From assembly GCA_977016875.1 (NCBI GenBank), contig CDRNST010000022.1, forward strand, positions 372,001 through 436,000: a stretch of DNA of 64,000 bases, written 5' to 3'. Below the pieces are notes generated by a model. The model did no database searches and was not told the origin of the DNA. It saw only the letters and a program-made list of their open reading frames with translations. A program made the translations under genes and the position numbers. Each line of letters opens with the position of its first letter. Position 1 is the stretch's first letter. The stretch comes from Pavona decussata (taxonomy: Eukaryota). This document shows positions 45,741-51,800 of the stretch, piece by piece.

Positions 45741-48392
45741 CATACAATTAAGACAATCAATTAAAGCAAGTGACACACTTAAGATACAATTAAGAAAATT
45801 AAGGTAGAAACTGATGTGAGAAAATGCAAACGTTTCATTCAATTTATTGACTATCGTTTACAACAATCAGGTCACAGGTACTGCAGCTAACTTTTGTAAT
45901 AACTTAATTTGTCGGTAAGACGGAGCCCTGCAGTCAGTGGGGAGGGACTGGGGATACGTACCTGACTCACCCGTTGCACCCCTCCTCCCTAAGGTTCTGC
46001 CAAATAGGACCTCAAATAGAGATCTAGAGATTTTACTAAAGGAAAGTGAAATGGTGAAAAAAAAGTCAGACAGTTCTTGACTTAAGTGGAAGTCACTCGC
46101 TACATAAAAGGATCTGAACTTCGAGATGCTAACAAACTCAAATTCACTTTGGATAATATAAGGGGGTTAGTTTGTAAAGAAACTGTGGTGCTACGTCGGT
46201 GGGGAGTAGAAACGAATGTTTGGTTTATCAACAGAGATGATAGCTAAAGTAGCACTCGAATCTCTGTACGGTGGCCAATTTACCTTTAGTTATCGACTCC
46301 GTTGATAAACCAAACATTTAAATTCACTTTCCCCGCCTCATTTTGCTACAGAGTTTTACCAACGTTTGTGTGGTTGTTTGATTTTAGTGATAGCTATGAA
46401 ACTATGTCATAAGTTAGACTTATGCCCCATTCACACCAAGGCTTTCATAAGCTGTTTAGTTAAACACAGTTTAAAATTGTTTCGTTTCATTAAAGCTGCT
46501 TTCGGATTTTTGACGACTACAGATTTAGAACAAGTTAAAGTTTACTTGAGTCCTATGTCAAAGCTAATGGCTCAGCTTTCTGTTACCAATTTTAATTTCG
46601 TTAAACCTGGTTTAATTAAACATGTTTTGTTGGTGTGAATGCGGCTTTGGTAAAATTCTAAAGTTAATGTGACTGTTCATGATCATGAAAGAGACAAGGC
46701 AAATTGAGTGCTTCAGCCAAATGCTTTGTACCTCCGCTGTCGGTTAATTTGCTTTGTAGTGCTTAACATCATCAACAGCTGTGTCTTCAAAGAGACTAGG
46801 TCGTTAAACGTTCATCGTTTTTCATGCAGGTCTAACCGGCGTACTTTACAACTGCTTTGTTTGAGTGCTTCATGCCAAGTGCATTAACACCCTCACCTAT
46901 TATACCGTTTTCAAGGAAACGTAATACATTTAGTTTACAGTTAGCATGCTTGAGTCCCTCAGCTAAGTGCTTTGCACCTTCATCGCCTATGAGGTTAGCA
47001 GAGACGTCCAAGATGTTTAGTTTGCAATTATCGTGCTTGCGTGCTTCACCCAGGTATTTTACGCCTTCGTGGGTTATGTGGTTTTCGTCGAGGCATAAGC
47101 TGATTAGTTTGCAGTTAATGTGCTTGAGTGTCTCAGCCAAGTGCTTGAAACCTTCGTCAGTAATGTTGTTCTTGTGGACGTTTAAGCTGCTTAAATTGCA
47201 ATTGCTGTGCCTTAGTGCTTCAGCCAAGTGCTTTACACCCTCATCAGTTATCCTGTTCGAAGGCAGATTTAAGCTGCTAAGTTTGCAATTATTTTGGTCG
47301 TCACCACTGTTAATCTCAAGGGCCCAACATTGTTATCTTCTAAGTTCATACACAACATTCCCGGCCCACAGCATTTAAATTAACTACATGCACGACAGCT
47401 CCAAAGTCAACAGGTGAAAATGAACAGTTACTAACATCAATCGCATTAAAGCCAATCTCCACTAGTTTGGTTTGTGTGGCAGAATGCTGCTCTACGTCGA
47501 TCCGTCATACAAACACTTACACAAGTTCAGTGCTAACAGTTAGTTTATGCAAAAATCCGGCCAACAGGTGAATCATTGTGCGTATCTCAAAATCCCAATT
47601 GCCTATTAGATCGCATTCCCTCCACTCTTTTGTCGATGTGGCAAGAAGTTCAGTAAAAATGTCGCCGTTTGACACTTTTGTATCAGAATCAGGCTCGAGC
47701 AATCCAGCCACAAACTGCAACATCACTTGCCAGGCACCTTTGTTGATGTCATCGGAAACAAATTCTCGCAATTATTCTTTTTCTTGAAGTGTGAGGCGTA
47801 AGAAACAGAATTGAGCTTTGGGTGGGTCATGTAGGGGACGGCATTTCACGTAAGGCCTGAATTGATGAAACAATCCACAATCCTCCAGCCCGGCCATCAA
47901 CTTCGTTTGATCCAAAGATAGGTCTTCCTTCTTTAATCCCATTTAAAGCGATCTTTCCTAATTTCTTGAAGACCGTTTTATTCTCAAGTTTAAGCTGATC
48001 AAATTTTTTGTACATGTAAGTGCCAAGACCAGTTTTAGAGCGGCTGTATTTATCCTGGCGATTGTGCTTAAAGAAGAAACTCTTGACGGTCATGCTGTAA
48101 ATTTCGGTAAGTTTTGTGGGGAGCTTTTGTGCACCATCAGCAACGTTCTTTATCATTTGTAGCAAGCAGTGACAAATGATAAAACAATTCACAGGGATAT
48201 AGTACAATTAATGAAAAGAGGTTTATGTTTGTGCTGATGTGTTGCCATATATTGTATCTTTGGCATCGGCGTCTTGATCACCTTCGGTAAACTTCCCCAC
48301 ATAGTCCTCAACTTGCTCAGCTGTAAATACAAGAATTTCAAGAATTCTATGAGCATTGAGCTGGCTAGGCATGACACAGCAGTTGGTGTTTG

Positions 48393-48851
48393 CATAGGGG
48401 GCCCACACAATGTGTCTGTGTAGCCGATTGTTATTATATAGTAAATGCACTGGATTTACCGTTTGCTTCACCTATAGCGATATATCGCTAACTATGTATA
48501 TAAATCAATGATAAATAAACGTTGAATTACCTTATCAGTGGTATATAGTCGTCCTTTTACCTCAAAAGCGGTTTTTTGAGCGATTTTGAAGGAGTTTGAG
48601 TTCGCCGTTGACTGTTCCTATATATGGAACAGTCAACGGCGAACTCAAACTCCTTCAAAATCGCTCAAAAAACCGCTTTTGAGGTAAAAGGACGACTATA
48701 TACCACTGATAAGGTAATTCAACGTTTATTTATCATTGATTTATATACATAGTTAGCGATATATCGCTATAGGTGAAGCAAACGGTAAATCCAGTGCATT
48801 TACTATATAATAACAATCGGCTACACAGACACATTGTGTGGGCCCCCTATG
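48393..48851. mobile_element. 459-bp fold-back transposon with CATAG termini and 7-bp TSD (P-element-like MITE)
   Basis: 226-bp arms that appear to be exact reverse complements around a 7-nt loop (48619-48625). TSD GTGTTTG at 48386-48392 and 48852-48858. Inserted in the NACHT coding region. Confidence 0.92.
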
Positions 48852-49633
48852 GTGTTTGTTGCTGTTATATAAACTGTGGCACCGCGGAGAAGCTTTCTGA
48901 TGCTACTTTGTTGTAAAGACAATGGAGAGGCATCCTCGCTTCCACAGTGTTCTTGTAATCTGACTCATCTTCAGTGGCGATGTCTGACTTTGCAGCAAAT
49001 TCGTCAATCCCATCAAAAATCAAAAGAACTTCGGTTGGGTTTCTAATAATGTAGTCCCAGACCTCATCATTCAAATGTTCCACTGTTTCTGAGCGGCCCA
49101 ACAGCTCATGAATGTTCAGGTCTGTTTCCGAGTTTTAAAAGCGCCTGAGTTTCAGAAGGAAGGCTACACCAAAATGCGTTTCTACATTTTGTTCTTCTTT
49201 GAAAACGTCATCAGAAGCCCACATTCGAAGAAGCTTAGTACACAACATTGTCTTGCCAATGCCTGGACGACCGACAACGAGAACATTCTTGTTTCGAGCG
49301 TCAATAATATGTGCTATTGGTACACACTCAGACCGATTGGCATTGGGTTTTGGGTAAACTGTAAGTTGTTCCTATCTCTCTGTAGGAAAGTCATATTTAG
49401 CCCTGCTTTCATGAATCTCCAAATTGACATAAATTCGATCGATATTTAAATCTTTAGGTGTCGGCCCTTCACCTGTATTAGGGCGGAAAGGTTGCTTAAG
49501 ATCTCTAAGTTGCTCTTTGCCTTCCACAGCACCATTTTTTATGTTCTTGAGTAGTACTTGTAGCTGTGATTGTTTGCGCATGCACTGTTCAGATTGCACT
49601 GTATCTGGCTCTTGTTGGAGTCCTCTTATCATC

Positions 49634-49664
49634 CTGGGCTGAGTTGCTCGAAGCTTGGTTAGCG

Positions 49665-49700
<36 letters not shown>

Positions 49701-49765
49701 CGTCATGGTATTTAACCCGGGTTAGCGGTAACCTCGGTAACCATGCTTCGAGCAACTGGGCTCTG
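49634..49765. mobile_element. PIF/Harbinger-like MITE family B inserted in the NLR linker
   Basis: Homologous (inverted) to 6829-6947, with CTG flanks. Confidence 0.8.
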
Positions 49766-51800
49766 GTGTTCTTGGCCTTCAACAGCTTGTGGCTCTTGTT
49801 GAGCCTGACTGAACGGAATTTGTTAGTGCTACAATTTTTCTTGTGGGGAAACAAGGGTCGGTTTTAAATGATGCGAAAAAACTGCGCGTTTCCCATGCCT
49901 ATTTTTTCCATCTCTAGCTCGTTAAAAGATCCAGACAACCTCAAAAAAAAAAAAAAACGAGAAAGCCATTCATTCCATTTACCACAGTCACAGTCTCGGT
50001 CCAGAAGGTTTTCTTAGTTGCTCTCTGATTGTGACATTCGAAAGTAGCAGGTACTGAAAATCTGTGAGCCAGTGTGTGATTTTGGCAGACGGATGAGACG
50101 AATTATTGCCTTCTCTTCGCGCTAGATTACACTTAAAATTTGAGGGAATGTTACTGGGATAAAGAAATTGAGTCTTAAAAACGATAAAAAAGGATCCCTA
50201 GAAAAAATCTGGTGGCAAGTTGACAACAGTACGCGATAAACAGCCGTCTTCGAGTTCGGTTTCCTTGTTGAAGTTGTCCTTCGGCATCTTCGAGTGCATG
50301 AACTGTTGACTGGATGCAGTGGGAGTAAATCACAGACACAATCGCAACCACAGAGAAGTTAGCAATAACGAAGCCATAAACTGGAATACCGAATTTGTTG
50401 CATTGCTTCTCGTATTTATCGAAACACTTTCCTCGGACGAAGTCCTTGCCGCTAAGTTTCGCATCACAGCGGAAATCAAACTTCAACTTGCTGTTTTCCA
50501 TGTCTGCAAAGATTCCAAACAGAGTCACTCCGAATAGAATCCAAAAAAAAAACTGCTACAAAAGTTTGTTTGTTGAAGATTATATGAGACAACAATTCTT
50601 TAAGAGATTCCATTTTTTTGTTTGGCCGTTTTCGCTTGTTTTATGTTGACACAAAATCGCGGGAGATTGACATCAACTCAGTCTTAAGACATTTGCATAA
50701 AGGAAAGAAACATTTTTAAGAGGGAAAAAGCTTTCAGTTTGCCGCTATGAATATTTACTTTTCACTCGCGCTCGATCCTTGAAAGCCATGGATGGTGACT
50801 GTTAAGTGTTTGCTTGCTGAATGAACTGTGCTATTTCCTCGTCTGGTTGTGTCCTAGAGTGAGATAACGTCGTCTATATAGCGTTGGTTTTGACGCGCTT
50901 CGGTTTAGAATTTCAGTTTCAATTTTTGCCTTTTGTACCCATGGCAGTACCATGAATCTGCAGACAGTCTTTCCCTTTGTCTGCTGCCTCTCTCAGTTTC
51001 TCCCTCGGGAAGTTGGCTCGCTCGAGCTTGCTTTGCTCGTTCACCCGTTTAGCTTGAACTCTCGACCATCACTGCCTTTTTTTTCAAGGCACCAAATTTT
51101 TGTAGAACGCTTTGCGCGTGGCTCAAGACATTGTATATATACTATGACTTTCTCCTTGTTAGCTATTCGAACCCTGGTCCCTTGCGTTCAAGGCAGGTGT
51201 GATAACCACCACACTACAGGCGAACCTACAGTGACATAGTACGTTATATCTTGCTTTTACACAATAACTTACTTTATTCCTTTGATATAACAGCTCATTA
51301 CAGTGATCCTATGTGAAAATATGGCTGATTCAATTAGTATGAATATTTCCTGCTGTCTTTGTTTCTCTTCGTTAGCTATCTCCACCCTCTAATCCCGTGG
51401 CTGGTGGATCCATGGGTGGGGAGGGAGTGACACGTAACTATAATAATTCCCCACTCCAGGAACTGTGAGAAGACAAGTAAAGGATTGCGTATTTACCCCT
51501 CCGAAAACTAAAAGAATTAGTTTTTCAGTGTTGCAAAAGTTTCAAACGCGTCTTGCTAGTGATTTATGCCGACGCTGCTACTTCATCGTTTTTCATTCGT
51601 TTTTGCTGTTTTATCGGAGATTAACTTTTTGCAGCCCCTGAAGAAGGTTAATTTTGTCTTACCGAAATATTGTGCAATAAAATTACCCTTTTTAGCTGTC
51701 CGATCAGCCTTGCATTTGGTTTTACGTTTTATGTTTGAAAATCACTGTTTCCAAAGGCTTTTCAACCGTTTTCAATCTCGTCCGTGTGAACGAAAGCCTA

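Follow-up and report, generated by a model that had tools for sequence, protein, structure and literature searches.

A decayed connexin-like NACHT-LRR gene in Pavona decussata and its intact paralogues

Background

The question raised by a 64,000-nucleotide stretch of the Pavona decussata genome (contig CDRNST010000022.1, positions 372,001 to 436,000; hereafter the window) is what kind of gene left its remains on the minus strand between window positions 50613 and 46690, where pieces of a four-transmembrane (4TM) domain, a NACHT NTPase and leucine-rich repeats (LRRs) follow one another, and whether relatives of that gene might encode NLRs that carry a membrane pore of their own. The locus is very probably a pseudogene that stands by itself and derives from the anthozoan connexin-like NLRs (CxL-NLRs), a family with intact members elsewhere in the same genome. 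Connexin-like (CxL) domains at the N-terminus of anthozoan NLRs were described by Butler et al. (bioRxiv 10.64898/2026.06.13.731801, 15 June 2026); the family and its suggested immune role are thus already known, and the tests presented here agree with that description independently. A literature search for connexin-NLR fusions in corals found this preprint only, and two papers on coral and cnidarian immune repertoires (PMC8260672, PMC10236652) do not mention connexin.

Results

Layout of the window copy

When the minus strand was read in six-frame translation from 50613 down to approximately 46690, three frames jointly spelled a colinear, intronless gene remnant with its parts in the order 4TM domain, linker, NACHT, helical domains and ribonuclease-inhibitor (RI)-type LRRs. 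The closest relative in the same genome was a single-exon open reading frame (ORF) of 1358 aa on contig C117 (L022:2726-6802; hereafter L022), and the alignment of the window copy to it was colinear from codon 1 through the LRRs. This part order and colinearity are far beyond chance, and they confirm the proposal of a first-pass annotation that one intronless path joins the 4TM domain, a linker, a NACHT and RI-like LRRs, the coordinates of which it had given correctly. The parts of the locus were located in the window as follows.

46690..50613, minus strand: the whole locus, read as a single-exon CxL-NACHT-LRR pseudogene; colinear with the L022 ORF (blastn, ~66-76% identity; tblastn, three frames with stops)
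50613, minus strand: start codon ATG, the protein beginning MESLKELL
49862..50613, minus strand: remnant of the connexin-like 4TM domain, TM1-TM4; aligned to nucleotides 1-735 of the L022 ORF at 75.8% identity
~49625..49775, no strand assigned: short repeat of ~135-150 bp, resembling a miniature inverted-repeat transposable element (MITE), in the linker between TM4 and NACHT; from genome matches, coordinates approximate
49375..49623, minus strand: pre-NACHT linker including NTGEGPTPKDLNIDRIYVNLEI; open piece 49375-49692, tblastn to L022 residues 254-490 at 58.6% identity
48868..49371, minus strand: N-terminal half of NACHT in two pieces split by one stop; Pfam NACHT
49249-49272, minus strand: Walker A, GRPGIGKT; six-frame reading
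49000-49026, minus strand: Walker B, LLIFDGIDE; six-frame reading
48393..48851, no strand assigned: palindromic MITE within the core of the NACHT, immediately ahead of the sensor-1 region; repeat search and sequence reading
47319..48387, minus strand: C-terminal half of NACHT with helical and winged-helix domains; tblastn to L022 residues 510-660 (51% identity) and 655-864 (43% identity)
46835..47332, minus strand: five to six RI-type LRRs in 29-aa units, open frame of 166 aa; Pfam LRR_6, E = 4.9e-15
46667..46762, minus strand: final decayed LRR remnant including TDSGGTKHLAEALN; sequence reading, with short blastn matches at 46705-46751

Nucleotide identity between the window copy and L022 (blastn, E = 1e-112 to 3e-159) was approximately 75% over the first half and 66% over the remainder. 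At the protein level (tblastn), the 4TM domain, the linker and the N-terminal NACHT were ~58-60% identical, the C-terminal half of NACHT with the helical domains 43-51% and the LRRs 54-59%; the LRR units at 46835..47332 matched any L022 unit within this last range. The 4TM remnant contained two Cys in outer loop E1, an E2 loop and a hydrophobic region that includes FRCDAKLSGKDFVRGKCFDKYEKQ, and its 126-aa open piece (50178-50555) was 76% identical to L022 over query residues 2-124 (E = 9e-57) and 73.8% identical across all 126 aa in blastp. Pfam was run on the window pieces separately: the 4TM piece searched alone gave no match, while of the two NACHT pieces one scored 29.6 bits (E = 7.3e-7) and the other 27.8 bits (E = 2.5e-6), against a cut-off of 26.7. 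The L022 stretch equivalent to 47319..48387 matched NLRC4_HD2 below the cut-off (E = 1.5e-6). The gene remnant stops at its last LRR piece and has kept five to six units, versus ~15 in L022.

Decay of the window copy

The locus offers no uninterrupted reading frame over its domains. Between 46690 and 50613 the reading frame changes at least six times (near 50549 and 50190, between 49862 and 49623, and near 48880, 47900 and 47310), no fewer than 12 in-frame stops were counted, and two repeats are inserted; the first two frame changes, together with several stops, break the 4TM remnant, and the region 47319..48387 holds the one near 47900 and at least seven stops. A profile of the 4TM domain searched against the genome matched the window copy at C22:421950-422552 (E = 6.7e-50) with five TAA stops, and in the genome-wide profile scan it was the sole heavily broken member and stood alone. 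Because of the frame changes, the stops, the two MITE insertions and the disappearance of most LRRs, the function of this copy is considered lost, in keeping with the earlier remark that it is broken.

These breaks rest on a single assembly, which weighs against our reading of the locus; an ENA contig with the same locus was 100% identical over 6001 bp and, because such identity marks the same assembly, is not an independent confirmation. That the locus is a working gene whose apparent breaks are assembly errors or introns is nonetheless hardly credible. Stops occur in every usable frame, frame changes are numerous, and one of the two repeat insertions lies with a target-site duplication inside the NACHT core. 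In addition, the window copy is only 75% identical in nucleotides to its closest paralogue, while clustered intact paralogues are far closer to one another, and both the missing LRRs and the single-exon structure of the relatives argue against assembly errors or introns.

The palindromic MITE consists of two 226-nt arms, 100% complementary and separated by a 7-nt spacer, and is flanked by the direct repeat CAAACACC at 48385-48392 and 48851-48858, an 8-bp target duplication; it stands in place of only 15 nt of the L022 alignment. At least 47 further copies of the arm were found in the genome at 93-99% identity, and because nearly all of them were 97-99% identical the family must have been mobile recently. 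Copies occur, for example, at C8:283526-283988, C178:1394584-1395577 and C169:612792-613787, and some have ~540 bp between the arms, so that longer relatives may exist. The short linker repeat (query positions ~106-256 of 49520-49870) matched more than 100 scored places in the genome at 85-91% identity, from 1031 first-look candidate places, and matched on both strands at ~72%, including itself in reverse; the window linker was ~214 nt longer than the L022 linker by blastn. The same repeat was also seen in head-to-tail arrays with a period of ~120 bp (C2:485314-486408 and C233:5529777-5530146) and is thus both dispersed and satellite-like.

Intact members of the family

The 126-aa 4TM piece of the window had 21 matches in the genome, 20 of them at other places, and the 4TM profile had 24, corresponding to approximately 22 loci of which ~17 had long open frames free of stops. 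Tandem clusters on C206 (496-553 kb), C331 (101-119 kb), C42 (301-370 kb) and C219 (1.65-1.82 Mb) hold most of these loci. Eleven single ORFs of 1045-1393 aa that were read out start with the 4TM domain, and a twelfth (1175 aa) begins inside it. Five paralogues were scanned against Pfam: NACHT was matched at E = 1.7e-29 to 4.6e-27, LRR_6 in four of the five at E = 1.7e-67 to 1.5e-45, and NLRC4_HD2 below its cut-off, and no CARD, DEATH or TIR effector domain was seen in the five. Pattern searches located Walker A, GRPG(I/V)GK(T/S), in 10 and Walker B, xLL(I/V)FDG(L/I/F)DE, in 11 of the 12 ORFs, and TT(T/S/C)RP was present in all 11 ORFs whose stretch after Walker B was read. The intact paralogues therefore have the NACHT with Walker A, Walker B and sensor 1 that defines an NLR, followed in four of the five scanned by C-terminal LRRs, while the NACHT halves of the window copy score above the cut-off but are interrupted. 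In outline, an intact member encodes in one exon a ~235-aa 4TM domain, assigned below to the connexin superfamily, a ~120-aa linker, NACHT, helical domains and up to ~15 RI-type LRRs.

The 4TM domain matched 371 fused relatives of 750-2376 aa in the protein database, the few named ones coming from the stony corals Desmophyllum pertusum, Oculina patagonica, Porites lobata and Montipora foliosa, and an exhaustive protein search yielded 334 clusters at 50% identity, with many matches of 240-310 aa. Given the open loci in this genome and the fused proteins in the database, the possibility that all homologues are pseudogenes, which the first-pass annotation had named as one that would undo its proposal, fails.

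Two groups of paralogues departed from the common plan. A CxL-NACHT subgroup of ~1046 aa lacked detectable LRRs (L029:3138-6281, L031:5497-8637 and L031:1213-4350, all on the minus strand): Pfam found no LRR in L029, a pattern search counted a single LRR match each in L029 and the two L031 ORFs, and the 4TM domain was only 33-36% identical to that of L022. Two open ORFs, L023:2364-5726 (minus strand, 1120 aa) and L028:1285-5298 (minus strand, 1337 aa), were without a canonical G-x2-G-x-GK[ST] Walker A in the pattern search, L028 also without the Walker B pattern; these may be NTPase-dead members, or their motifs may have been missed by simple patterns.

Probable transcription as one unit

The case for a single transcript with both channel and NACHT parts rests mainly on family ORFs that run uninterrupted for up to 4.2 kb. 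In addition, a 1455-nt contig from run X1 covers L022 2710-3973 with four differences and spans L022 residues 1-415, which include the channel domain, the linker and Walker A. Runs X1-X3 are probably RNA, because their contigs total 123-176 Mb (X1, 123 Mb) against a 602-Mb genome, yet depth on the L022 gene is 15-100 (X1, 15); that they are RNA is a guess, which weakens this second line.

The X1-X3 contigs all break at L022 2710 (C117, ~2324709), which lies 16 nt ahead of the start codon, and from there on share 187-192 letters unlike those of L022; a loose 30-mer from beyond the break was not in the assembly at up to two mismatches. A spliced 5' untranslated region (UTR) at this point was considered and not used, the genomic bases before it being TT, not AG. 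Non-canonical splicing of the 5' UTR, a structural variant and an artefact of the contigs are all possible causes of the break.

Connexin homology of the 4TM domain

Hydropathy analysis gave four TM segments in nine of the 11 paralogues with a full domain, a simple threshold missing TM4 in L026 and L028. In an alignment of 92 sequences, two Cys per outer loop (C49 and C63; C166 and C190) were invariant or nearly so and a Glu in TM4 was invariant; N-X-S/T sequons in the E2 loop of the paralogues fit an extracellular face of that loop. Single sequences matched the Pfam connexin family PF00029 in two of the five scanned paralogues (E = 1.3e-5, 25.5 bits; E = 1.7e-4, 21.9 bits), below the cut-off of 31.3 bits. 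By contrast with these single-sequence scores, a profile of the 92 sequences matched 34 solved connexins of distinct sequence (E < 1e-3) across nearly all of the domain, with Cx31.3/GJC3 (6l3t) in first place (E = 2.3e-12; profile positions 19-233). Outside the connexins, the top matches were rhodopsin (0.02) and LRRC8A (0.055), and neither a pannexin nor an innexin was matched among the solved structures. In the profile alignment, the two Cys of each CxL loop fell on Cys one and three of the connexin loop, and at the end of E2 the CxL stretch C-k-n-q-r-A-s-e-k-t, which begins with the last Cys of that loop, was paired with connexin C-N-L-S-R-P-S-E-K-T.

A usable AlphaFold2 model required the 92-sequence alignment (pLDDT, the model's per-residue confidence score, 91; pTM, its global score, 0.83); with the 11 paralogues only, pLDDT was 48. 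The model has helices at 15-40, 78-114, 128-155 and 194-228 and strands in E1 and E2, that is, four TM helices with beta-hairpin outer loops as in connexins. In Foldseek the top 29 matches were all connexins, Cx31.3 first, with target-normalised TM-scores of 0.63-0.71, and LRRC8 appeared at rank 30. The top 15 of an exhaustive structural scan (VIA-align) comprised connexins, LRRC8, pannexins and an innexin at Z 10.9-14.8. A complex prediction with four copies of residues 1-240 scored 0.02, with the alignment not used and without controls, and counts neither for nor against an oligomer.

The structural scan also raises an objection to connexin homology, namely that the domain might be a convergent, or pannexin- or LRRC8-related, large-pore fold. 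By structure alone it ties with LRRC8A:C (Z 14.6) and pannexins (Z 12.3-13.8), which stand level with connexins (Z 12.9-14.8); single sequences stay under the Pfam cut-off; and each outer loop has two Cys, as in innexins, where connexins have three (CX6CX3C and CX4CX5C). We consider this objection very improbable nonetheless. The profile separates connexins (E = 2e-12 to 4e-4) from LRRC8A and retrieves no pannexin or innexin, identity in the structural alignments is 15-21% to connexins versus 9-12% to pannexins, and remnants of the connexin signature align. Two Cys per loop also occur in the epsilon clade of connexins (Cx23), and HHpred placed CxL at 99.95% with 6L3U (10.64898/2026.06.13.731801). 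Because structure alone shows only a large-pore 4TM fold, the assignment rests on the sequence profile, and on that basis the 4TM domain is a homologue within the connexin superfamily (PF00029/IPR038359). The label "connexin-like" given to the window fragment at first sight was therefore apt, with the likeness visible only through the profile and the intact paralogues.

Other features of the window

Two further features were noted at lower window coordinates than the locus. Three overlapping ORFs of 393, 670 and 313 aa occupy 24658-28545 on the plus strand in a block that has a higher G+C content (0.48-0.52) than its surroundings (~0.39) and a strong AT skew (-0.19); the 670-aa ORF matched RVT_1 (E = 3e-12) and the 313-aa ORF a tyrosine recombinase (Phage_integrase, E = 1.5e-6), and the block looks like a DIRS-like retroelement with open frames. 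On the minus strand, a 198-aa open stretch at 35416-36012 contains four thrombospondin type 3 repeats (TSP_3, E = 4e-36) and is probably an exon of a thrombospondin/COMP-like gene.

Discussion

Possible mechanism of intact members

The large pore that the first-pass annotation had envisaged agrees with published work, and for the same reason is not a new idea. CxL proteins formed plasma-membrane puncta in HeLa cells and channels that release ATP and glutamate on depolarisation or CO2, as did the NACHT-bearing constructs edCxL50 and pmCxL62; free-standing CxL proteins of ~30 kDa also form channels (10.64898/2026.06.13.731801). The same preprint obtained AlphaFold 3 (AF3) hexamers or heptamers, described anthozoan CxL as hemichannels, not gap junctions, and suggested an ancestral immune role for the family; it contains no NTPase mutants, no LRR deletions, no NLR ligands and no construct described with LRRs (10.64898/2026.06.13.731801). 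The core of the earlier proposal, in which the pore would be assembled or opened through LRR sensing and NACHT oligomerisation, finds no support in the data, and a location at the symbiosome membrane is pure speculation.

Connexin-type domains are inserted into the membrane co-translationally and normally oligomerise constitutively. Because their subunits do so, the NACHT-LRR parts of an intact CxL-NLR would probably be held as a ring from the start, and given this known biogenesis a pore that assembles upon sensing, as in a resistosome, is less likely than a pre-assembled gated ring. With connexin topology, the NACHT-LRR parts would form a six- or seven-membered ring on the cytosolic side, immediately beneath the pore; LRR ligand binding and NACHT nucleotide exchange would then shift the ring and open the gate, through which ATP or glutamate would leave as a danger signal or ions would flow. 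By analogy with LRRC8 channels, which are governed by a cytosolic LRR ring, a pre-assembled NACHT-LRR ring that gates a pre-built connexin-type pore on sensing is a possibility that we put forward tentatively, and we are a little more hesitant about the fuller proposal that the cytosolic ring is the ligand-operated gate of its own hemichannel. If this ligand-gated reading is true, it would describe an NLR whose immune output is direct ATP or glutamate release or ion flux, and innate immunity would become the ancestral role of connexins.

Several points weigh against a ligand-gated ring. We know of no hexameric NACHT wheel, solved wheels having 4-12 members, and channel function may not depend on the NLR part, the NACHT-bearing constructs having opened on depolarisation or CO2 without a ligand (10.64898/2026.06.13.731801). 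This last behaviour, along with the free-standing channels and the many database matches of 240-310 aa, would also be expected if the 4TM domain served mainly as a membrane anchor and clustering device of an ordinary NLR, its channel activity in HeLa cells being incidental or independently regulated by voltage or CO2. Such a role appears somewhat unlikely to us, since 92 diverse sequences keep the features of a pore family, namely four loop Cys that are invariant or nearly so, the Glu of TM4 and the overall fold, and since 92% of anthozoan CxL proteins have a NACHT (10.64898/2026.06.13.731801), which suggests that the fusion as such is under selection.

The pore might, on the other hand, act in the opposite direction, as the entry route by which an extracellular ligand (a nucleotide, cyclic dinucleotide or peptidoglycan fragment) reaches the LRR sensor at the cytosolic mouth, with NACHT signalling through other partners. 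LRRC8 channels, the nearest structural analogue, import cyclic GMP-AMP (cGAMP), which counts in favour of such a route, as does a connexin topology that would place LRR-NACHT at the cytosolic mouth. The pore is also known to pass molecules of the size of ATP (10.64898/2026.06.13.731801). We nevertheless regard an entry route as unlikely: with no CARD, DEATH or TIR in the five Pfam-scanned paralogues, there is no obvious downstream handle, and the channel is the sole candidate effector.

Significance

The family is of interest for two reasons, both already public (10.64898/2026.06.13.731801): it dates connexins back to the common ancestor of cnidarians and bilaterians, and it provides an NLR that is embedded in the membrane and has a large pore of its own. 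To this the window locus adds the modest facts that the family leaves dead, dispersed copies and that recently active MITEs land in them, and the approximately 22 loci of this genome, mostly intact and tandem-clustered, are a source for test constructs.

Comparison with known systems

The genes found here resemble the CxL-NLRs of Butler et al. in the N-terminal CxL-NACHT-LRR arrangement, the typically single-exon structure, the two Cys per outer loop and the best solved relative, Cx31.3 (6L3T/6L3U), and their number fits the 4-100 copies reported per coral genome (10.64898/2026.06.13.731801). They differ in that the window copy is very probably a pseudogene, pseudogenes not being mentioned in the preprint.

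Chordate connexins (PF00029; Cx31.3/GJC3, Cx26/GJB2) and the CxL domain have in common a fold of four helices whose outer loops are beta hairpins. They also share Cys one and three of each loop, the TM4 Glu and the stretch after the last E2 Cys, and both form ATP-permeable hemichannels (10.64898/2026.06.13.731801). Unlike the connexins, the CxL domain has two rather than three Cys per loop, a long E2 loop predicted to be glycosylated and Pfam scores below the cut-off, is fused to a NACHT-LRR part of ~1100 aa and, in anthozoans, forms no gap junctions (10.64898/2026.06.13.731801).

LRRC8, the volume-regulated anion channel (VRAC), likewise combines a large-pore 4TM domain and a cytosolic LRR ring under the pore in one chain and, as a structural neighbour of CxL (Z 14.6; Foldseek rank 30), is the best working analogy for LRR-controlled gating. 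It differs in having no NTPase between pore and LRR, LRRs of another type, and a pore that is related to pannexins, not connexins (CxL profile E = 0.055).

The plant CC-NLR resistosomes (ZAR1, Sr35) and the fungal NLR effectors of HeLo/HET-S type are alike in that the NLR's own N-terminal part is the membrane effector. Their N-termini share neither sequence nor fold with CxL and are soluble until activation, inserting after the oligomer has formed, whereas the N-terminus of a CxL-NLR would be a 4TM channel inserted into the membrane co-translationally.

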